A stretch of 62,862 bases of DNA, the filler included, from Klebsormidium nitens (lineage: Eukaryota; Plantae; Klebsormidiophyceae), in assembly GCA_000708835.1 (NCBI GenBank). It is 7 parts of 7 records of this genome, joined end to end, with 100 filler letters (N's around TTAATTAATTAA, not from the genome) between each part and the next. Parts side by side here need not be neighbours in the genome. Positions count along the whole stretch, not along the records: positions 36,782 to 52,533 come from DF238001.1; 6 more parts are not named here. One strand, given 5' to 3'. Under the pieces are notes generated by a model. It was not told the DNA's origin. It did not search any database and saw nothing but the letters and a program-made list of their open reading frames with translations. Position 1 is the stretch's first letter. Each line of letters opens with the position of its first letter. The position numbers were made by a program, and so were the translations under genes. Of this stretch, positions 37,701-51,686 are shown in pieces.

Positions 37701-39072
37701 TGGATGCCCTTGCATATTCATCAAGTATGCGTCATCTTGAAGATGACAAGGCTTCCATTGTGTTCCTGGTAACTTGAATGAGACGTGCACACTGTGACCT
37801 GCTGTCATCGCTTGTTTTGACTCAGGGTGCAGGTAGAAAATTGTTCAAGTCTGGTTGGATATCATTCATGTGCTACCTTTCTGGCACCAGAACTCAGTAT
37901 GTCTGCAGTCCGTGTTCCCGTCCTGTCAATCTGCAAGAGGCCTCCTCTTATCTGACACATATTATTCCATCATGCAGCGTTAACATGCTGGACTTTGCTG
38001 CGTGCCTCGCTTCTCTCTCGGAGGGCAGCGTTGATCTGACAATGGCCCCACCTGGACCCCAGCTAGAGCTGCTTAGGGGGCTGGCTCTAGTGGACATGTA
38101 TCATGGGGAGCTGCAGAGTCGAGGGTTTGTAGGGTCCGGTCAAAAGTAGACCATGGTTGGAACCAAAGACCTTTGCCAAGGAAGGTTAACACCAACGTCT
38201 GTGGTAGAAGACCGTGTTACAGTCTGCCAAAGCATGGACTGTCTGGAAGGGCTTTCTGAGGAGGTTGCGCTTGTCCCTTTCTCCATGCTGGAGGGCCTGA
38301 GCGGTGACCTTGAGAGCAGATTCAGGTGATGGGATGGCACGTGGCTTTGAGTGTCCCAGCGTCTCAACCACATTAACATTGTTTCACTTGCTTTTCACTT
38401 GCAAGTAAAAAGCAAGTGAAACGTGTTTTACCTCTACACAGATAGGCAATGCCATTAGAAGTTCAACATGGTCTGGTCATTTGGTGGATGGCCAGTAGAA
38501 TGTTAAGCAGCCCATGCAGGGTTGCGGCGGGAAGTCTATGAAGTACTGTTGGCAACAGTGTGAACCCAGTGGCGATGCTCAGGATCATGATGCGAAGCCC
38601 ACGAAAAACTCAAATGTGGTGTTCTCATATCATGTAGCTCAAGCTGTGTGAAGAATAGCATATGACAATCACCAAACTCAAGCTGTGTCAAGAGAAGCAT
38701 ATGACAATCTGCATGACAGGACTGGTTGCTGGAAGAGGTTGTCAAACCCATTTGCCGCTGTTTTGCAGATTGGTGTGCCCACATGTGGGCTGTCAGCCAG
38801 TTCAAGGGGAGCCATGCTGGTGAGTTGACTTTCTGTGCTAGACACAATGAAAGAGTTCCGTAGTTTGCAACAATATGCAAGGACATACATGTACACTGCT
38901 CAAGCGAGATTTGGCAACATGATAGAGGCTCTTCATGCATCTCTTGCAGAACTCCATGCTCGTGAATATTTGGGCAAAAGTAGGCAACAGAGGTGTATTC
39001 GTCCAGCATATGAACCACTTATAAAATGACACTTTCACCTCACTTTGTCCCCCTCGATCTGCTCGCAGGCAC

Positions 39073-42000
39073 TTGCAAGCTCCACCACGCACAGCCATAG
39101 TATCAGTGGGTTCTGAGCAGGCCCTTCCGTTGATGGAAATGGCACGCGAGCTTGACAGGTTGGAAGCCGTTTCTTTGTTCGAACGAATGCTGGCACAGAA
39201 CAGACTGCATGGGAAGCCCTTCTGGGACGGTCCTGTGACGGGACCTTCCCAGTTGGTGCAAGCTGCAACCCGGCGCTTGCTACAAGGCCCAACTTCAAGC
39301 CCCACCAGTGAACCAGCCACTTCGGTTTCCATCACGAATCCGACTCCAATTACACCCACCTCCGGCGACCCCCCTAACGCCCCTCCTGCCCAGCCGCCGA
39401 CTCCTCCTTCCCTGACGCCGGCCCCTCCCGCCCCTGACACTCCAAGACCAACACCAGGTCCCCCTACATTTACTCCAGCTCCTCCTCTCCCTGACCCCCT
39501 TGTTCCAACAGCAAGTCCCCCTCTACCAACCGAGCTGACTCCTTCTCCAGTACAAACGCTAAAGACCCCCGACATCACTAAAGCCCCTGATGCCCCTCCC
39601 CCACCGACTCTACCGCCCCTACCGACTCTAGAGGAACAACCAATCACTAAAGCCCCTCTGGCCCTGCCCCTACCACTACCCCTATTTCGTCACCAGCTCA
39701 ACCTGTGTTCACTCCAGCCCCCCCAACCCCTGCCCCTACTGCCATGCAAGCACCAGTAATTCCCGCACCCACAGTAACTCTACCTGCTACACTTCAAGCC
39801 ACGCCTGCACCCGCGAATCCGCTTCCCACGCAGCCCCCGGCAATTGCTGCCCCAACAAACGTAGCCATACCGGTTCCAACGCAGCCCCTCTCGACAGCGG
39901 CCGCAAGCACCTCCCCTCCCACAAAAACGTCCACGCCAGCTGCGCCTCTACTGTCGGCACCCACCCCCGCCGCGACACTGGTCACCACCCCAGGTATACC
40001 AACGCTCGCCCCCACAGTTGCACCCATTGTTGCTTCCACTGTTGCACCCCGTTCCGCCACCGCCACGCCCCCCCCCACACCAGCAGGTACGTTAGCACCC
40101 CCCACAACGCCGTTTGGCACTCCTATTAGCACCACTCCGCTTGTTGCGCAAGCGCAGTCGCTGGCTCCGACACTCGCTACCGTCCCTCCAGGTACGTTGC
40201 AAATGCCCACTGCTCACTTCCGCTCCTCCTTTTCCCTTCTTTTCGAGTGCCGTACCCGTGACTTTTGCACCGGTAGTCACCCCCAGGTAAAATGCTCGCT
40301 CCACCCATTGCAACAGGTACTTCACGACTCTCCCCTCGTTTTCCCTTTGATTTCCTAACTCTTGGTTCGCCTTTCCGCTCGCTAGTCCTTGAAGTAGCAC
40401 AGGCGCCTCTTGCAGTACAGAAAGTTCGACGCATCCGCTCCGCCTAGCCCCAATAACTTTGCCAAAATGCCCAGTACCAAGCCTTTTTGCTACCTTTTAC
40501 GTTTCCACTTTAGCTTCCACGACGCTCGGGCCATCCAATTAATGCAACAGGTATGTCACCGCTCTCACCCGTTGTCTAAAGTCGGCCCTTAATATACCGA
40601 GGCCCCACCTCAGTTCGCGGCGGCTATATCGCAGGCGCTACACTAGGACCCCCCCCTATAGGTACGTCCTCCACCTCAGCTCCGCCAACTCGTACAGCTT
40701 GAAGTATACCGAGTCTGCCGAGCCGCACGCCCTCTTTTACGCTGTTTTTTCGAGCCCGCCCCAATGCACGCTTCGGCGGCCCCTTGCAACAGGTATGTTA
40801 AAGCTCCTCACTGCCACGCGAAGGTGTTACTTTAGCTCTTGATTCGCCGAGCTCCATCCCAGTCTCGGCGATAACGCAGGCGCCACAAGCCCCCCCGGCA
40901 GGTACCTCATTATTCCCATTTCTTTGAGATCCCGGAGATCCTCACTTTCTAGGTACCGCGCTGCATGCCTAAAGTGCAAAGAAAGCGCAAGTTTCAACAA
41001 TTCTCACAAACGGCCAAACCAGATGTGTTTCCCCTCTTTGAATGCAGCTTTGGTAACCACTATTGGGCCTTCTCTCCTTGGCACACTCGTTATTTCGACG
41101 AGCCCTCCTTGATACTGCAAGACGTAATGGTCTCACAGGTGTCTTCTTTTCAGTTCGACTCTGCTAGAGCGCCCGTTCTGCTGAGCAGCACGGACGGACG
41201 GCTTTGACCAGCTCTCTGATGATGCCCTCTGCCGCTTCGGAAACCGTGACGCAGCCAGGCACATTGGAGTCGCTTGTCTCCACTTCTGGTGACCTTTCAC
41301 CCACCTGGCTAAGCAGATCAGGGTCTGGACTAACCAATCCGTCGCCGACACTTCGGTGCGCCGCCCCCACCCGTGCACCCCAACTAAAGAATTCCTGTCA
41401 TCAATGCGACTCTCCCTAACGCTTTCATCGGTTCATATCTAACTAGTCTTGAGTGCCGCACTACAGGGATCAGCGGGCTCCTCAACACGAGTGCGCCCGT
41501 CAATACAAGCTTGCCCCTCAGTAGTTCACCACTGGGCGTCAACCTAAGCAATAGCCCCTTGCTCACGCCCTTCCAGAACCTTTCTCAGCTGAACGGGACG
41601 TTTGCGCTGGCAGCGCCGCCGCTCACCTTCCCTTCCCCTCCTCCTTCCGGAAAAAGTGGGTTGCGGTTCCCCCCTTTTCTATACCCATTCTTCCCGCTTG
41701 CTTACCTCTGCTTGCTGAGAGGTCTGGTGGAAAACTGTCGGAGTGTTGACGTCTGAGCTAAATGCTTGTGTAGGACTTGTCTCTTCAAGGTCAGCCTACG
41801 AGGCTCAAAAATTCGGGCTCAGCAAGGGGCTCGCCTCGGCCCTGTATTCCAGTCAATGCAAGCCCTTCAGTTGAAGTGCGACTCTTTCAATTAGGCGAGG
41901 CATGGCTATTCAAAGTTTGTCCTCATCTTGCCAAGCATTTGACTGAACTCGTATTTCGTGAACAGAACGATTCCAAAATAAATAGAGTCCGTGCAGAGTC

Positions 42001-45000
42001 AGATCGATGAAACGGCACAGACCAGACAGCACACATCACCCTTCTCAGATGCATCGTCACTTTTCGCCTGCTTTCGCAGACTGTCCGAACGCCTGCCCTC
42101 TGGGCACCGCTCTGCGGCCGGCCGACTTAACCTGCGACTGCGTCCTGCCTACGATTGTGGAGCTGGCCTTCCGGCGATTCGCTCAGCAGTTTTTGCCCAA
42201 CGTTCCCGAGTTCGTCCTTGAGGTCGCCGATGGCCTTAACCTGACCGCCGCTCAGGTTTCGGTACGCCTTTGCTTGCCTCGTCCCTCATTGTGCACCTTT
42301 GCATCCTCTGTTGGAGGTTTGGGTCTCGTGTTCGACCGGGCTGCTGCGCAAGTGCTGGATAGCTGGGACTGTTCTGCCTTTCTCGTGTTGTTTCCGGACG
42401 TGTCCTGTTTCAAAAAGCCGTGTGCTTTGCCTGTGCAGCCATGCTGCCAGAGTTGTTAGGGGCAAGAGGGTCGTTTTCTTCAGCATTTTTCCGGGTCATC
42501 GAGTAAAGCTTCTCGATTGTTCCAACACTAACATCCGTAGAGATTGTCTTGACGGTCTTTACTTCCCGATCCTTGACGTCGCTCTTGCCATGAATCAAAT
42601 AGAACCGTCTGTAATTTCAAACGTAGCAAGTCGCTCCTACTACATGATTCAGTTCCAGCCGCTGGTTTATTTTGGCGATCGAATGGATGTTTCCAGCATC
42701 TCGGACTCTGAGGAACTAAGCTTTGAGGTTAGGAAGATCTGCTCAGCCGCTGAAATTCATTCTACACATTCAAGACCGTGAAAGTGTTCGTTTTACCAGA
42801 CAAGGCGATTGGTGCTTCTCGACTAAAAGCGGTGTTCGTGGAATCCACGCTGTTTCGAACCCCCGGCCCTTTCCACCTCATCACAGGTTCATATATATGA
42901 TTACCACATCAGCAAATACTAACAACTCCTGGCAGGCGCCTGGCAGGCTTTGCTTCAAGAAGCACTATATCTGTTCAAACTTGAACTAGGAGTCTTGCTA
43001 ATTGCCCGGCTTCTGACTCCAGGTCCAAGGCTTCTGCTCGGTTCTGCACAGCGGCCGCCGATTGCTCCAATCACAAGTCCATGACCTTATCGTGACGACT
43101 TGGCTGCTGCCAATCGCCTCTCCAGCGGATCCTGCCCCGATGCAGCTCTCCAACAATCAGACAGCAGCAATCACAGAGCTGTTCGTGAGCAAGCAGATGA
43201 GGTTGAATCAGACTCTGTTTGGAGACTACTCGGTGATCCAGATTCTGCCCCCCGGTACGTGGCTGGTCGACGTGGCTCGCTGCTGCGTGCTGTAAAAGAA
43301 TTGGGACTATACGCCATCCGTTGCATGTGTCGACTTACGCAAGTTCGTTATGATCATTGAACCAGTGAACTCAGCGTTGCGCTGAATCTCGAGCCCTAAA
43401 TTGGGTCCCGACGAGGATCAGGATTGGAGCTTACCGTCAAAGGAACCAAAGCTAAATTGTGTATTTTGCTTCTTTGTTTACCAGGGTCGACCAAGTAATT
43501 TGAAGGCAGGTTGCAGGTAACCTCGGATTCCGACATGTCCCGATACGTGTCCAACCAAGCTGGACCCTTTCCTTCTAGCCCCACGCACGGGTTTCGGTAA
43601 CACACCTGGCCCTTTCTGCGCCTAGCTGATACTATGCCAACCTATGCTCTTGTAGGAGTGAGACCTTCTCCCCCGGCCAACTGCACAGCGCCCGTCGCAG
43701 CCGCCACAATGGGAACCGGAAGTGGCGTACCCATCGTAGCCCCTAAAGTGGGGGCCGTAAGTGGCAGCCCCAGCCTCGGCACTCCTCCCAACGCTTCGCC
43801 AAGCAGCAGCTCAAGTGACTCAGGTTCCCTGAGCGTCGGGGTCGTCGCTGGAATTGTGGCGGGCGCGATTTTCGGCATCGGCGGGCTCCTGTTCTTTGTG
43901 TCGTTTGCCTCTGTGGTCCGGCGGCGGCGTTTGCAACAGTCGGCAAACAGGACCGGGGGGTGGAGCAAAGACGAGGGCTCTCCAGATGCCCCCGTGCGTG
44001 GTGCTGTGAGCTCAATCTCCACAGTTCGTTCGCGCTCTCGTGACTTTGCCCCTCTCCGATCTATGCACTTATCACACGCCCTAGTTACCCGCTCCCCATG
44101 TGCATCTTCTCTGTCGGTTTGCTTAAAGACGAGACCCTGAGATCATTGTTTTGGCGTGTTCCAACCTGTTTGCAACAGCATAATGTGCACAAGATATAAA
44201 CGATTTTGTAAAATCTGCCTTGGAGGATCTTACCAGTACCGGACTGTTACCAGAGTTCGCTAATACTACGGCTTTTGAGCGGAGGCACTCTGTAATCCAC
44301 GCATTCGGTTTTTGTCTGGGCGTGTTCAGAGCGGAGTCGGGGGGCTCACAGCAGGATGAGCCTTCCGGATGATCAACCCGATCCAAGGGTACGTTCACAA
44401 GACGCACTTCATTCTCGTCTGGCTTTCGGGTAAAGAAAGAGACATTAGCAAAGAATGCGGGGTTGATCCTTGCACGTACCAGATTCGGTGGCGTCGTCAA
44501 TCATTCCAAGTTCCGGTCGCCCTTCTTCACGGCTGAAAGATGTTCTTACAAACAATTGAACAATGAATAAGTCAATGGACAGCCACCCCGGCCTGCTTCG
44601 ATCCCTCCTTCCTCCCTCTTCGCACAGGAACGTGCCCCTGCGCTTGGGGCCGGCCTGGCCGCCGCTGAGGGGCTTGACTCATGGGGCTCCCCCGCCTTCG
44701 CCCCACTGCGGGGCCCTACGATCCCCCCGACTTCCGCAGCCTCCAATGCCGTCACCCATGTTCCTCCCGCTGGATTTCTCCCGGTGAATTCACTCGGGCC
44801 CCCGTCCGTTGGATCAACCAGCTGGCAGGATCCTCCTGCCCGGATCGGGTCGTACGGAGCCACAACGGCCACGCGACCAGGCCAGTTTCCTGTAAGCACT
44901 GTGGATTCCACCGGTTTGGCGCCCGGGCTGAATTACAGCAGCGAGTTGGAGTATTACAGTCCGGAACAGCCAGGTTCGAAAGGCCATAATTTGAAGTGGG

Positions 45001-45014: not shown

Positions 45015-46565
45015 GCAGTCAAGTTGGTCTGGTTCTCTTAGAAGATGAGAGATCTCAGGCCGGGCCGTTCGCATAGGCTATGCTTGAAAGTATGGCTTGG
45101 TGAAGAGAACGTTGTAGCAGCGGTTGGCACTATCCTTGTTAGATTGACGTGTGTAGATGATGGCACACAGCTTGACAAAATGAGGCAGTCTTCTTGGCAC
45201 TATCATGCATCAGGTCATCAGCCTTAGTGCCAAGTTATCTGGCGGAAGGTTGTTGTTGACATAGGAAACCGTCCGTAAGCCCAACTTTAGCGTGCTGAGT
45301 TACGAAGTCCTCACTGAGTCAGCGGACTAGACGTCTGCACCTCGTCTGATTGACATTGAAAGATGGAACAATCTCAGGTAGGACACGAACGCCGTAAAGT
45401 CTTGTTGGACCTTAAAGGACGTTCTTTGTTTGGCAATCCTGCCAGCTTTCGAGGGTTAGCAAACAAGCACATGACTCACCGGACCTTCACACCAGTTCAG
45501 TTGTGTTATCAGTGAAGTTATTTTCAATCGACGACACTGGTTTTCTCAAACATTTTCGATCGAGCTAGTATCATGCCAGGGCCGCGGCTTCTCGGACTGT
45601 GAGACTGAAGTTGGACCCGGCCATGCATGCACAATATAGCTTTGAATGCTTCAAGTAGGATTTTTGTACTTAATACCTTGTCGGCTTCATGCATCATTGC
45701 ATTCAATCCCCAGGCTCGCTTTATTCATGCATTCGCCTTGCTTAAGTCATTCATTCATCTTGGCCTCCGACGGTCCATACCCAATGATCAGTTATAGTAC
45801 CATTCATGCATTCCGTAGCATGATGCACCTGCTTTTACTGCATGAGTCAATCATTCTATATTGCGCTTCGCACGTACTGCTATTTCGAATTAAGGTCAAG
45901 CTGATAATCTCAGTCCGATCTTGATACATCATTCACGTCAAGGTTGCACAGTAGCGATGGTTCGTATGATATCGGTGACTGCTTCAACCAAACCTGCAAA
46001 GTTTAGCTCCCCTCGACTCCGCACCAGTCCACCCAGGTGATTGCCTCATGGCGCTAACACAACTTCCAAGATCTGTGCATGATTGGCACACGTGCCTGGA
46101 CGTTTGTACGATACAGTTAGGATTTCGTGTAAGTTGATTATAGGGTTACATGTATGGGAACCCACATATGTACATCATTGAATCTTGACTGGACGTTGTT
46201 GGATCCCTCGTTAAAGGTTGCACTGCACTCTAGCCGTCCTGAAATGTACGGTAGGAGATTGGTCGTCCTTCGAGTCCGACGGTGACGGTCACTAGTCATC
46301 CTTCAGTGCTCAAGCTCGAGTGATTGGCATGATTGCAAAAGTAATCGGAGCCTCTGGCCCGTTGCGCCTTCCCAGAGTCCAGACGGAGCTAAACTTCAGA
46401 GAGCTCGAAAAAAGTATTTACCCATTCGCGGAAGGACGCACCGGGACCCGGATCGGGCAGTATGGGGAGCACACTCTTGTAATTCTCACGTTATTACTAA
46501 AATACACAGCCACCGACATACAAGAGTTACATTCATGATCAGTAGATCAGTAACCTCTTTAAGCG

Positions 46566-49500
46566 CTAAAAGGTATAAGCGGACCTGACGGGGTTCTCCA
46601 CACCCGCATCTCTAAGGATTCCCTCGTCCTCACTCCTATCTAACGCTGCCCTAGTAAAGAGGAAAGGCTGGCCAGCAATCTTTTGGAAGCGTCCCACGAG
46701 CACACCCACTAACGACTCACCCTCATAAACTGCTTCCCACAGCACATTGCAATACTGTGCCGATAGGCTCGTTAATGACACCACGATGGACTGAACAAAG
46801 ATCTGCTCGTCGATGTAGATTCTCGTTGCCCTTGAACTTCCCACGACATACAACCCGGTCTGGAACACCACTTGAGGGAGAGCCTCGAGCAGCATCTCAA
46901 CGGACACCCGAGCGTCGTGATACCGCTCAAAGCTGACAACTTCCTCCCCCCAAGCGAGGTGAAACCCAAACTTTCCCACGACAGCAAGCACGTCCTGGAC
47001 AAGCACGCCTACTACGCCGAAGGGCAGTAGCACAAGGGCAAGAAGCCAACGGTGCGGGGCCCTCGCATTCCTAGCCGGGTGACTATCTGGAGAAAACTCC
47101 GAGGGCGGAGGCCAGAGCCATATGAAGCGCATTCCGCTCCATCTAAGCGCCGGACGCGTTATGGAAGTCCAAGTCAAGGTGACTGCATATGCCCCAACGA
47201 TGAAGGGCGCGCATATGGACGCCAAAACCACCCACATCGGCCACGCCCCCACCACCTCTTTCAAAACGAAGAGGTCCGTGACTAGATCGACGACAGGCAG
47301 TACGCCCAATGCCGCTCCCCAAACGTAGAGTCCGGCATATTTCCAGCTGCAATTCGGAATGACAACATTTACAGGACGTTTCGCTGACAGCAATGAGGTT
47401 CGTTCTAAAAAGGTCAAGGTCGGGCAGTCCTTTAGTAAGCAGCCACTACACGCCTCAGTCAGCAGCAGGTGTTCCCTAAAGGTCAACAGCAAGCTTCCGT
47501 TCGAGGACTTGCCAGACCAAGCCAGTAGTGGGTAGTCTTAGTGACGTCTCCAGATGGATTGCACAGTACCCGGGACCTTACGAACGCAAAGTCCTACTGC
47601 CCCGTCCTTTAAGGGATTGCAAGCGCCAAGGCATCTACTACGGTAGTGAAAGACCCAGATCAAGGGACCGACTCTGGCAAGCTGATGCTCTGAAAAGCCG
47701 CTTTGCTTTCACCCTTCACCCAGCTTGCAGTGTCTAATCCAGACCTACGAGGACTAGATAGGACACATTTTGGAAGGCCTCCGAACAATCTTGCGACTTC
47801 AGCCAGTGTCCACCAAACGCGGCTGATGCTTTGAGCATCCTATGGTTGAACAAGCCAGGGTGTGCGAATGCCGGCCTCCCTGCAAGCTGCTGCTTAAGCT
47901 GACAGACCCTCAGCTGAAACGCTGGGCCGTTTTGGAGGCCATACCCAACACAAAACGCGCTCTCACCAGTCTCGACTCGTCGACAGGCCTGTGAATTGAG
48001 ACAGGCACCCGCGAGAAGGTGGGGTGAGCTGGCTGATTGAGATGGAGTTAGGTGCCAAGCGCGTGAACATTTTGGTTGAGGATCTAGCTGAAGTGCCTGG
48101 GTAGCTCGTATCTCACTCGTATATCACTGACCTGGCACGCGTCCGTCGGGTTACGTAAGCGTCATCAGTATAAAGTGGAAGCACATTCAACCTACCTGCG
48201 AGAGTCTTGCTCCTCTTGAAGATCGCCGTTTGGCCGCTTCTGACGCCGCCATCGTGCCACCAAAATAATGGCGCGCGTCGCCAGCAGCAAACCGACTGCA
48301 AACGACCCGAAGACGATTGCAGCGACCCTCTTGGCTTCGGGGTTACCGCACAGGTTGCCCGCCTGAACCCGCGTGAAACCCACCCCGGTATACGCTCTCC
48401 CGTCCGGGCCCAGATCGATGTAGTCCACGAAGTTGGGATCCGTCAAATCATAGGTCCCCTTGTTGTTCTTCAGAGCGTTTGTGAAACGCTGATTGTCATC
48501 ATAAACGGGTTCGGGAAGGTCCCCGTCCAAGAATACGGAGATCTTGTGCAGGCAGATATGACGCCTTGTGCTACGCAATAACCTGGCCCCCGTGCCCCGC
48601 AAGCTCACAACGCAGCCCGTGTTGCACGCATCCCAGAAACGGATGCGCTTGAGACGCGGGTTTGGGTCCGTCAGATTGACAATCTTGCAGGAGCTAGGCA
48701 ACGAAGAAAGATCCAAAGCCTCCGTGGTTTGATCGCCTAAGCCCAGCTGGAGGAGGTAGATATTGGTCTGCTTTGCAGAACGGGGCGGCTGGCAGGGAAG
48801 TCCCAGCGACCTGAGCTGCTGAAAGCGAGACAGGTTGACCCTTTCGCACGATGTCATGGTAGAGGACAAGTCGAGGTCTAGGAGGCCAGTCAGACTGCCG
48901 AGCTCGGAAGGAATGGGACCAGAAAGGTCGTTGCCGTTAAGGGTAAGGGTTTCGAGGCTCGTAAGTTGGCCGAGTTCGTGGGGAATACTGCCTGAGAAGC
49001 TGTTGTTGTCAAGGTACAGGTCTTTTAACTTAGCAAGGTTGCCTAGCTGGGAAGGAATGTTGCCGGATAGATTGTTAAAGGACAGCCAGAGGACGGTGAG
49101 GTTTCCCATTTGGCTAAATTCAGGGGGCAGGGTGAAGAAAAACTTGTTGTCGTGGAGCCAAAAGTCGGTGAGGCTAACAAGCTGGCCGAGCTTGGCCGGG
49201 AGGACGTCTGAAAGACCGTTGGTGGAGATATCGAAGGTTTGGAGGCTTGTAAGTTGGCCAAGCTCGGGGGGAATGGCACCCGTAAGGTTATTGTTGTAGA
49301 GGTAGAGGTGGCGGAGACTCGACATATTGCCGAGCTCAGAAGGGATTGTGCCAGAAAGACTATTGTTCTTGAGGACAAGGTAATCAAGGTTTGCGAGGTT
49401 GCCAAGCTCGGGGGGAATCAGGCCGTGAAAGTTGTTGTCTTGGAGATAAAGGTATCTGAGTCTGGACAATTTCCCCAGCGGAGCAGGAGTTGCACCGGAG

Positions 49501-50012
49501 AGGTGGTTGTTGTACAGGTAGAGGTGTTCAAGGCCTGTGAGCTGGCCAAGCTCGGGAGGCATGACACCCCAAAGACGATTATTGTCAAGGGAGAGTCTAT
49601 TCAGCTGGGCAAGCTGGCCAAGCTTAGGAGGGATGGGGCTGGAGAGACCGTTGTAAGAGAGGTCCAGGTTTTCTAGGCTCTCGAGTTGGCCAAGCTCGAT
49701 TGGGATGGCTCCAGAGAGGCTATTGTTGTGAAGGTCGAGGACTTTGAGATTGACAAGCTGGCCAAGCAGGGGAGGGATCGAGCCGGTCAAGTGGTTGTTG
49801 GAAAGATCGAGGGCAGTGAGGTTTGTTAAGAGCCCTAATTCAGAAGGAATGGGCCCGGTAAACCCCATACCACTTAGACCGATGGTGGAACGCTCTGAAA
49901 GGCCTCCTCCCACCAGCATGCTGATCTCATCGATGGTCACACACCGCACTATACACATCCATACCCACCCGGAGACGAGGAAAAGAAGAAACTCCTTGCC
50001 GGTAAAGGCCAT
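46566..50012 (-). CDS. LRR receptor-like protein fused to an XK-related-like multi-pass membrane domain
   Basis: Exon 50012-48196 encodes a signal-like N-terminus (MAFTGKEFLLFLVSGWVWMCIV), ~14 plant-type 24-aa extracellular LRRs (LxxLxxLxLxxNxLsGxIPxELGx) and a TM helix. A phase-2 GT-AG intron 48195-47347 joins it in frame (DSR-S-WKYAG) to exon 47346-46566, which contains VDLVTDLFVL, EMLLEALPQVVFQTGLY and SIVVSLTSL. Confidence 0.75.
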
Positions 50013-51686
50013 GTTGAGCCGCACGCCTGCAGACAAACACATGAAAGTGTCAATGACCACCATCCATGCTTAAACGGTGGCTAGCAAGACAATCAAAGAA
50101 TAATTTGTAATGCAATTATCATCACATCCAGGTTTTCAAAACAGCTCAGTCCCGACTAGCTACAAGTCCCTCCAAGCGAGGGCTCCGCATGATACGGGCA
50201 ACTATCAAACTCAATGAGCTTAGATTCCAAAGTCAAATTTTGATAGGAAAATGCTTTTGGCCAAGAGAAGCAGGAGTCGGACCAATCAAACAGAGGGTGA
50301 GACATACAGGAGTCCTCAAGAAGAGCTAGCATGACGCCAACCACCAATGGTATGCCCGCATGTGAAATGCGCATAGAGCTGACATGTGCCTGTCCTGCCA
50401 CTTGCAAGTGATCTTTTTGTAATAGATCACTGAAGAGTGCTAGTAATATTAATCATTGTGAAATTCTGCCAAAGGCCCGAAGAAGGTATGACCCCAGGAC
50501 AGAAACAGTGGAACGGGGGGGTCGGAAAGAGTATCAGCTAGACAGCTGAAGCAAGCTGTGCAATTTCCCCCCGATGTCGCTGCATGACAGGTCTTAGTTG
50601 GACTCTTAGGAAGTGGGCTTCCAAGAGGGTTCCCCCTAAAAGAGGGGACCAAGCGGGCAACTTCTGCATGTTCAAACCAGCTGGACTTTCTGGTCGCCGG
50701 CCATATCCTTCCCCAGTCTTGGCACCAATGCAGAGCGCAACATTGCAGGCCAGCTCCATCCAAGGTCAGAACAGCATATTCCAGCACGTTAAGAACAAGC
50801 GTAAGCCCTTTCAAGAGTCACCAACGCGCCGGCCTCTGCCCCCCTATTCCGACTTGACGGTGTTCGGCAAGCAGGTCCTGAATCTAGCAGGGCCTAAGTG
50901 GTCCAGAGGCTTGGGGTGCACGCCCCATGAACGGTCTCAAATGCGAGGGGCTACCAGGCGATAATTTACAGCGGTCCGTATAATAAGAATTCCAAGCTTC
51001 CAAGTCCTCGCTTTAGAGAGTCAGCTCAGGCTACTACCTAAAGTACAGGACCACAAGCTTCAACACATTGCAAGCTGCAAGTTGCTGCAGGCCGTCGGAA
51101 AGGCCGCCTTGTTCTCAAGGCCTCTTGTCATCTCGTCCTCATGCACCACCCTGTGAAAGAATCAGGATTCAGCAGTGAGCACTGTGTGGCAGCTGTTCTT
51201 TGGTCAGCTAGCTGTTCAAGTTGGGTTTCAATTTCTGCCTGGCCGGGAGACTTTTGGCAGGTTGACCACCAATTTAATACGGTACTTTTGACGTCATGCC
51301 GTAAAACTAGGCTCTAGGTAGTAGGCACTCCCTTTTACAAGTTTTAGCAGTGATCGAGTCTGTTTGAGTCTGTGCTGCCATTTGATACCGGAAGTTTGGC
51401 CGGGCTGTTTGCGCAAACAACTTCCTCGTCAGGCCGCCGGCGCCTGCTCCGGGAGTCCAGTCCCGGCGGGCCCACGTGCTTAACGCCTAGTCTAGTCTAG
51501 GTAGGTAGTACCGTAGTAGGCCCTGCAGTAGCCCCTGGCCCCTGGCCCCTGGGCCTGGGCCTCAGGCTGGCGGCGCCTGGCCCCAGGTCTGCACAGTGCA
51601 CACTGCAATCGTGCCTACTACCGTACCGTACCTCGAAGTCCGGAAGTTCCCAGTACCGAGGATGAATATCGACATCTTGTTCCGCA

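Follow-up and report, generated by a model that had tools for sequence, protein, structure and literature searches.

A green-algal leucine-rich-repeat receptor that carries a single-repeat XK-like membrane domain in place of a kinase

We analysed a gene on the minus strand of a 62,862-nucleotide stretch of DNA (filler included; assembly GCA_000708835.1; hereafter the window), within the part taken from record DF238001.1. Its product couples a leucine-rich-repeat (LRR) ectodomain covalently to a single domain resembling the N-terminal repeat of XK-related proteins, and it belongs to an expanded, divergent family that lacks a kinase. Judged from the sequence, this C-terminal domain (C-domain) occupies the place that the kinase holds in LRR receptor-like kinases (LRR-RLKs). 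The locus is very probably a two-exon gene for an 865-residue type-I membrane receptor of a Klebsormidium-like streptophyte alga. The explanation that best fits the results as a whole, and that we favour with moderate confidence, is a kinase-free LRR receptor with a half-XK domain, for which pairing and scrambling are a tentative mechanism.

Two exons in one reading frame

Two long open reading frames (ORFs) were listed on the minus strand of this region, one at 48192-50063 (623 aa), which encodes the LRRs, and the other at 46566-47492 (308 aa). The 3' end of the LRR ORF reads CGC AG/GTAGGT (the slash marks the splice site), and an acceptor, TTGCAG/C, lies at 47347/47346 within the second ORF. 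Joining 48196 to 47346, as the first-pass annotation of this DNA had proposed, keeps the frame (AG+C = Ser) and yields an 865-aa product with zero internal stops; the frame, the GT..AG ends, the spliced contig of a relative and gene models of Klebsormidium nitens all agree on this junction. Left unspliced, the LRR ORF runs into an in-frame TAG (48192-48194) directly past the donor. Exon 2 has no conserved start codon of its own, and similarity to relatives begins exactly at the acceptor. Translation probably starts at position 50012 and not at 50063; the similarity of the relative's contig starts near 50027. No second family member was found in this genomic piece by tblastn.

The signal peptide, the approximately 14 LRRs, the Cys-containing juxtamembrane region and the transmembrane (TM) helix that had been read from exon 1 were all recovered by Pfam, hydropathy and translation. 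The LRR ORF matched LRR_1 (E 6.6e-47), LRR_14 (E 2.3e-35) and LRR_8 (E 1.1e-34), and residues 38-384 form 13 complete and two partial LRRs in perfect 24-residue phase. No kinase Pfam family was detected in the window protein. The juxtamembrane module, with the motifs FWDAC..GC, VCL.RISVFLDGD and YTGVGF.RVQ.GNLCGNPEA, gave no Pfam match. Its 19 homologs were all Klebsormidium-type, and none of them carried a kinase while 14 carried the C-domain; five stop just past the TM helix and RWRRQ, as from an intron-blind gene caller. As far as sequence comparison goes, the module is family-specific, occurring only together with the half-XK domain. Within the receptor TM helix (48255-48326) lies an Arg (…LLLATRAIILVA) at a site occupied by Thr or Ile in close relatives; an acidic residue in the XK-like domain is a possible partner for it.

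The fusion of the LRRs to the XK-like domain is real, and four independent lines agree on it, the fourth being the architecture of the family as a whole, described further below. Contigs of public runs were compared with positions 46300-50300 of the window. A contig of run X2 (record 9, 3250 nt; the run is presumed, as a guess, to be RNA) comes from a relative that is ~93% identical, and it covers 46615-47346 and 48196-50027. Its joint omits exactly the 849 nt from 47347 to 48195, which end in GT..AG on the coding strand, and it is flanked on each side by ~300-375 nt of unlike sequence, UTR-like (untranslated-region-like) for an orthologue or close paralogue. Even if the run were DNA, this contig holds a continuous fused ORF. 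A Trinity transcriptome ORF of Klebsormidium subtile (P0038) likewise contains LRRs and the C-domain. The first-pass annotation had allowed that transcripts might end at the TAG at 48192; the relative's contig and the K. subtile transcript are instead spliced and fused. In K. nitens, the gene model P0006 (KFL_000650330) places the C-domain behind the same juxtamembrane/TM sequence. At that locus the LRR ORF, the TM ORF and the domain ORF lie in a row, and the intron (GG/GTAAGT … CAG/C) has the same residue position and phase as that of the window gene.

We weighed against the fusion the alternative that the two ORFs are used separately, producing a receptor-like protein with a short tail and leaving exon 2 as a separate small membrane protein or unused. 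The stop directly after the donor would fit this, as would the five database homologs that terminate at that point and several stand-alone 230-300-aa models of the C-domain in databases; moreover, the search of public runs turned up no RNA from the exact organism. The short models, however, also fit intron-blind gene callers. The spliced form in the 93%-identical relative and in the Trinity transcript, the conserved intron position and phase, and an exon 2 whose homology starts at the acceptor with no start codon of its own speak against separate use, which we consider highly improbable. An unspliced isoform that stops at the TAG at 48192 may still occur in this organism beside the spliced one.

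The C-terminal domain and the XK fold

A profile search with the exon-2 domain among 1.84 billion representatives returned 78 at E<=1e-3, with 27 at E<=1e-30. Exon 2 is not a chance reading frame, because it has 78 homologous cluster representatives and motifs conserved across the family. The motifs DLVTD, EMLLEALPQVVFQ and SIVVSLTS, which the first-pass annotation had pointed out, are present in the sequence and conserved across the family, and GSSRATRIYID is the most conserved stretch among close members. With residues counted within the exon-2 domain, the 40 members aligned keep P157 (37/40), Q162 (31/40), D24 (30/40), Q158 (28/40), D20 (26/40) and E150 (24/40). After iteration of the hidden Markov model (HMM), the family model formed one unit of ~220 positions, with one domain per protein. 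Apparent double matches in distant members had hinted at an internal repeat, but on HMM iteration they became a single full-length domain, and a two-repeat protein was rejected.

An AlphaFold model built from a 40-sequence alignment (A2) reached a predicted local distance difference test score (pLDDT) of 84.4 and a predicted template modelling score (pTM) of 0.78; it superseded an earlier run on 19 close sequences (A1), which was too poor (pLDDT 58.8). The model shows five long helices (Table 1), which, by their order and by the fold match described below, probably correspond to TM1, TM2, the partly inserted helix IH1, TM3 and TM4 of XK. The signal peptide and LRRs are predicted to lie outside the cell. 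Since the TM helix is followed by RWRRQKR, the XK-like domain behind it would start on the cytosolic side, as XK proteins do. A cytosolic start fits the TM helix and RWRRQKR under the positive-inside rule and also the Arg-rich TM2-IH1 loop. The short TM1-TM2 loop would be outside and the Arg-rich loop and IH1 inside. The GSSRATRIYID loop would again be outside, adjoining the ectodomain, and the AGQP tail inside.

When the model was compared with 48,161 representative chains by VIA-align, rXKR9 (7p16_A) ranked first, with Z 10.4 and a root-mean-square deviation (rmsd) of 3.5 over 150 residues, and model residues 3-208 aligned on chain residues 4-190. The second rank was hXKR4 (9boj_B; Z 9.1) and the third hXKR8 (8xej_X; Z 7.9). 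In a second look, among 727 chains, full-length rXKR9 (Z 10.6; chain to 190/196) and hXKR8 (7dce_X; Z 9.4) took ranks 1-2, and the next chain was TTYH2 at Z 6.5, placing the XK-family chains 3-4 Z above the next unrelated one. Twice, therefore, XKR chains came out on top, and the fold that they share with the model is that of the N-terminal repeat, TM1-TM2-IH1-TM3-TM4; the refuting case named in the first-pass annotation, a C-terminal domain without an XK-like fold, did not arise. XK-related (PF09815) was also the sole Pfam family recurring among members, first in 1/19 and then in 3/40 (best E 2.1e-4), and residues 274-473 of the member P0052 match positions 3-174 of the 337 profile positions. 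Language-model features of three divergent members led to the same small cluster set, one cluster of which is 25% PF09815; we treat these as leads only. The XK match is hard to ascribe to chance, because XK fills the top three of 48,161 ranks and the Pfam signal falls on the same half. We regard the C-domain as likely homologous to the XK N-terminal repeat.

The ESM Atlas clusters reached in this way are short (200-270 aa) eukaryotic proteins with members from Mucoromycota, Foraminifera and Mollusca, a possible sign that single-repeat XK-like proteins exist on their own in many eukaryotes.

XKR9 is built of a pair of related repeats, and either one contains four TM helices plus a single partly inserted helix; its N-terminal repeat runs TM1-TM2-IH1-TM3-TM4, and a conserved PQL motif marks a kink in its polar TM3 (PMC8298096). 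In XK proteins the two repeats run parallel, and a pseudo-two-fold axis relates one to the other (PMC12334663). The algal domain has five long helices in place of the eight TM and two partly inserted helices, in two repeats (ND and CD), of an XK protein. Because both matches, that of the structure (chain residues 4-190) and that of Pfam (positions 3-174 of 337), are confined to the N-terminal repeat, we describe it as a single-repeat, half-XK domain. Scrambling in hXkr4 has been linked to D125 and D129 in TM1 and to E313 beside P316 in TM3, equivalent to D26, D30 and E141 of Xkr8, and the acidic "stairway" vestibule of Xkr4 and Xkr8 lies wholly within the N-terminal repeat (PMC12334663). The algal D20-x-x-x-D24 and E154-x-x-P157-Q158 have the same spacings as in Xkr4/Xkr8, the residues being equated by spacing and not by superposition.

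Several results weigh against the favoured explanation. The window domain did not match Pfam XK-related (PF09815) at E<=1, and the best member, P0052, reached 18.9 bits (E 7.9e-4) against a gathering threshold of 24.8 bits. Searches of PDB sequences with the 19-sequence profile, the 40-sequence profile and P0052 alone returned no XKR chain. Foldseek of the model against PDB and an Atlas shape search with the model both returned nothing, and VIA-align itself cautions that Z below ~13 is common for helical bundles and that Z near 10 can be reached by chance. Only half of the XK fold is present, and E154 is kept in only 14/40 members of the wider family. The spliced contig comes from a relative and from a run only guessed to be RNA; the activity, the dimer and the ligand are inferred only. 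The first-pass claim of an XK-like domain thus stands in its fold, with XKR9, XKR4 and XKR8 in ranks 1-3, while the domain covers the N-terminal half alone and stays under the Pfam threshold; the comparison with Xkr8/XK that it had called for likewise divides between a blank Foldseek search and a VIA-align search that puts these three chains first. Because both the Pfam threshold and the two-repeat architecture fail, the protein is not a plain member of the XK-related family and is best termed a single-repeat relative. The sole result of the PDB sequence searches was NCX_Mj at an insignificant E of 0.06, which we rejected, and a word-indexed profile search for canonical XK proteins returned family members only.

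These blanks bear on a second alternative, in which an unrelated algal membrane domain of four or five helices has converged on XK packing and the label is functionally empty. Every sequence signal is sub-threshold, both shape searches were blank, and the caution on Z below ~13 applies to just such helical bundles. Against this, the Pfam profile, the language-model features and the structure are three independent lines that point to one family. XK chains hold the first three of 48,161 ranks and in the second look score 3-4 Z more than the next unrelated chains, Pfam and structure both cover exactly the N-terminal repeat, and the published motif spacings are reproduced. A merely generic match is therefore unlikely, and we return to a domain related to the XK N-terminal repeat.

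A kinase-free family of algal receptors

Nearly all long members (533-1127 aa) have the C-domain at their C-terminal end and LRRs at their N-terminal end. N-terminal LRRs were found in ~25 of the 27 long members tested, and Pfam detected no kinase in ~30 long relatives, a pattern at odds with the possibility, raised at the outset, that the two exons belong to separate genes. Fusions of LRRs to XK-like domains, for which the first-pass annotation had suggested a survey of algal genomes, form an expanded family in Klebsormidium and Trebouxia. Named members come from K. nitens, with at least a dozen loci (for example GAQ78274.1, GAQ78110.1, GAQ93027.1, GAQ81742.1, GAQ84842.1 and GAQ81339.1), from K. 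subtile and, more distantly, from Trebouxia (KAL3154985.1 and DBA95257.1, both with LRRs). The closest relatives of the window protein are only 53-64% identical to it, indicating that the family is large and divergent. No land-plant name was seen among the 30 clusters looked up, which is not proof of absence.

Some members depart from the common plan. P0015 carries cytosolic Sel1 repeats C-terminal to the C-domain, and P0082 has a weak ankyrin match. In P0121 (905 aa) the C-domain lies mid-protein and is followed by a new LRR block; this is probably a pair of tandem paralogs merged in one gene model.

The family resembles plant LRR-RLKs and LRR receptor-like proteins (LRR-RLPs), such as FLS2, in its signal peptide, 24-residue LRRs, single TM helix and basic stop-transfer sequence, and its expansion and divergence recall those of immune receptor families. 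In contrast to LRR-RLKs, no algal member has a kinase; a multi-pass XK-like domain stands in its place, and a family-specific Cys-containing module precedes the TM helix. The window protein is not an LRR-RLK, because the kinase is lacking. Nor does it have the short cytoplasmic tail of an LRR-RLP: the spliced product runs on for 259 multi-pass residues and would be an RLP only if unspliced. The K. nitens proteins GAQ78274.1 (P0027) and P0044 have LRRs and the half-XK domain and no kinase, although GAQ78274.1 is named 'LRR receptor-like serine/threonine-protein kinase FLS2'; the FLS2 name on these K. nitens entries is a mis-annotation, and recognising the family corrects it. The proteins are already public, as hypothetical or mis-named FLS2-like entries, and their architecture is unrecognised. 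In the limited literature searched, we found nothing on Xkr/XK-related proteins in Klebsormidium or algae, or on such proteins with LRRs.

The XK-related family (PF09815) comprises XK, Xkr4, Xkr8, Xkr9 and CED-8, animal scramblases activated by caspases or partners. Like the N-terminal repeat of these proteins in the order of its helices and in its fold, the algal domain also gives a weak but specific Pfam signal; its cytosolic start is predicted, and its DxxxD in helix 1 and Glu-x-x-Pro-Gln in the polar helix 4 agree in spacing with the TM1 pair and the TM3 kink. It differs in having one repeat (~210 aa as opposed to ~330 or more), in its sub-threshold Pfam score, in the LRR ectodomain and extra TM helix in front, and in occurring in green algae and not in animals. 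We know of no caspase-site logic in the algal protein. XK/Xkr scramblases are regarded as animal proteins, 'from nematodes to humans' (PMC12334663), and the algal family would extend the XK fold to the green lineage. More speculatively, the two-repeat fold of animal XK proteins could have arisen by duplication of an ancestral half like this single-repeat domain.

Possible modes of action and neighbouring genes

Because the algal domain supplies just one of the two repeats, parallel and pseudo-symmetric, that make up a normal XK fold, two receptors may pair. In the mechanism that we propose, two receptor chains would pair in the membrane and rebuild an XK-like unit, and a ligand on the ectodomains would shift the packing of the two halves. 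The acidic vestibule would then open and the bilayer would be thinned or scrambled. Phosphatidylserine would be exposed as a result, or a comparable membrane signal produced, and the pathway might serve non-self recognition or cell death. We put this mechanism of scrambling and dimerisation forward tentatively. In its broadest form, a green-algal receptor class would use ligand-driven LRR pairing to assemble two half-XK domains into a working scramblase. Recognition of a pathogen, a mate or self/non-self would then directly abolish lipid asymmetry with no kinase involved, giving a phosphatidylserine-type 'flip' signal or cell death; we regard this form as speculative and rather doubtful.

The half-XK domain may alternatively be homologous to XK and yet move no lipid, acting as a scaffold or adaptor that anchors the receptor and recruits a VPS13-type lipid transfer protein, a co-receptor kinase or a second-repeat-like subunit, with signalling through these partners. 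Purified Xkr8 and Xkr9 alone show no scrambling, and XK acts with VPS13A (PMC12334663). The presence of one repeat only, the variability of E154 in the wider family and the protein-binding modules of some members (the Sel1 repeats of P0015 and the weak ankyrin match of P0082) are also consistent with a scaffold. However, positions linked to scrambling in Xkr4/Xkr8, namely the acidic pair of TM1 and the P-Q kink of TM3, are kept here and in most members. A scaffold role is the main rival to the favoured explanation, though we think it improbable.

The nearest functional analogy to the receptor that we favour is the Xkr8-basigin/neuroplastin complex (PDB 7dce, 8xej). Both systems combine an XK-type domain with a single-pass ectodomain protein; in the alga the pair forms one chain, and the ectodomain is an LRR solenoid placed covalently at the N terminus. 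Basigin is a separate Ig-domain protein that serves as a chaperone or subunit, and to our knowledge it is not a ligand sensor.

The other known fusion of LRRs to a multi-pass domain is LRRC8/VRAC, which has a pannexin-like membrane domain followed by cytosolic, C-terminal LRRs. In the algal protein, by contrast, extracellular, N-terminal LRRs precede an XK-like membrane domain. A weak fold echo of LRRC8A (Z 5.3) was nevertheless seen by VIA-align, together with pannexin-2 (Z 7.1), pannexin-1 (Z 7.0) and connexins (Z 5-6), raising the idea that copies of the domain assemble, as the four-TM subunits of pannexins, connexins and LRRC8 do, into an oligomeric pore, which would make the protein an LRR-gated channel. 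These matches have an rmsd of 6-8 A, fall below all XK chains and come without sequence or motif support, so that a pore appears very unlikely.

LRR receptors of plants and algae are believed to depend for signalling on kinases, either their own or those of partners, and the present family, read as single-repeat relatives of XK, suggests a kinase-free conversion of extracellular recognition into a membrane-lipid signal. The activation mechanism of XK/Xkr proteins is still disputed. A natural 'half' protein offers a test of whether the N-terminal repeat alone suffices for scrambling and whether dimerisation activates it.

Table 1. Features of the receptor gene and its predicted product, in window coordinates
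Feature	Position	Strand	Details
Exon 1, coding sequence	48196..50012	-	aa 1-605 plus 2 bases of codon 606; ORF list, Pfam, translation, hydropathy
Probable start codon and signal peptide, MAFTGKEFLLFLVSGWVWMCIVRC	49941..50012	-	hydrophobic peak 2.04
~14 plant-type 24-residue LRRs (LxxLxxLxLxxNxLSGxIPxELGx), without island domain	48861..49901	-	Pfam and register
Cys-containing extracellular juxtamembrane module (…FWDACNTGC…ICLHKISVFLDGD…YTGVGFTRVQAGNLCGNPEA)	48333..48860	-	aa 385-560, 176 aa
Single TM helix VAAIVFGSFAVGLLLATRAIILVA (48255-48326), then RWRRQKR (48234-48254)	48234..48326	-	hydropathy 2.17; sequence
Intron, 849 nt, GT..AG, phase 2	47347..48195	-	donor CAG/GTAGGT, acceptor TTGCAG/C
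Exon 2, coding sequence: 259-aa half-XK domain and cytosolic tail	46566..47346	-	stop at 46566-46568
Helix 1 (probable XK TM1), D20-L-V-T-D24 at 47274-47288	47256..47342	-	model helix 2-30
Helix 2 (probable XK TM2), WPMWVVLASICAPF…	47163..47243	-	model helix 35-61; W35, P36, L41 conserved
Hydrophobic helix 3 (probable XK IH1, partly inserted), past the long Arg-rich, predicted cytosolic loop	46971..47057	-	model helices 97-125
Polar helix 4 (probable XK TM3), E150MLLE154ALP157Q158VVFQ162 at 46860-46898 (EMLLEALPQVVFQ)	46842..46928	-	model helix 140-168
GSSRATRIYID loop between helices 4 and 5, predicted extracellular	46809..46841	-	invariant 19/19 (A1); side predicted from topology
Helix 5 (probable XK TM4), SIVVSLTS	46722..46808	-	model helix 180-208; F183, S186, S190 conserved
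Predicted cytosolic tail, conserved AGQP motif and acidic stretch	46569..46721	-	G225, P227 invariant in A1; lower pLDDT

On the plus strand, a neighbouring gene at 39073-44140 looks like a proline/threonine-rich receptor. It includes PT-rich ORFs at 39073-40358, where GC skew falls to -0.58, an ALE2_N domain (PF23180, E 4.6e-7) at 42007-42456, and a Ser-rich stretch with a TM helix and RRRR at 43634-44140. A 123-aa ORF at 37778-38146, also on the plus strand, gave a borderline Barwin match (PF00967, E 3.8e-4; 20.8 bits against a cutoff of 21).

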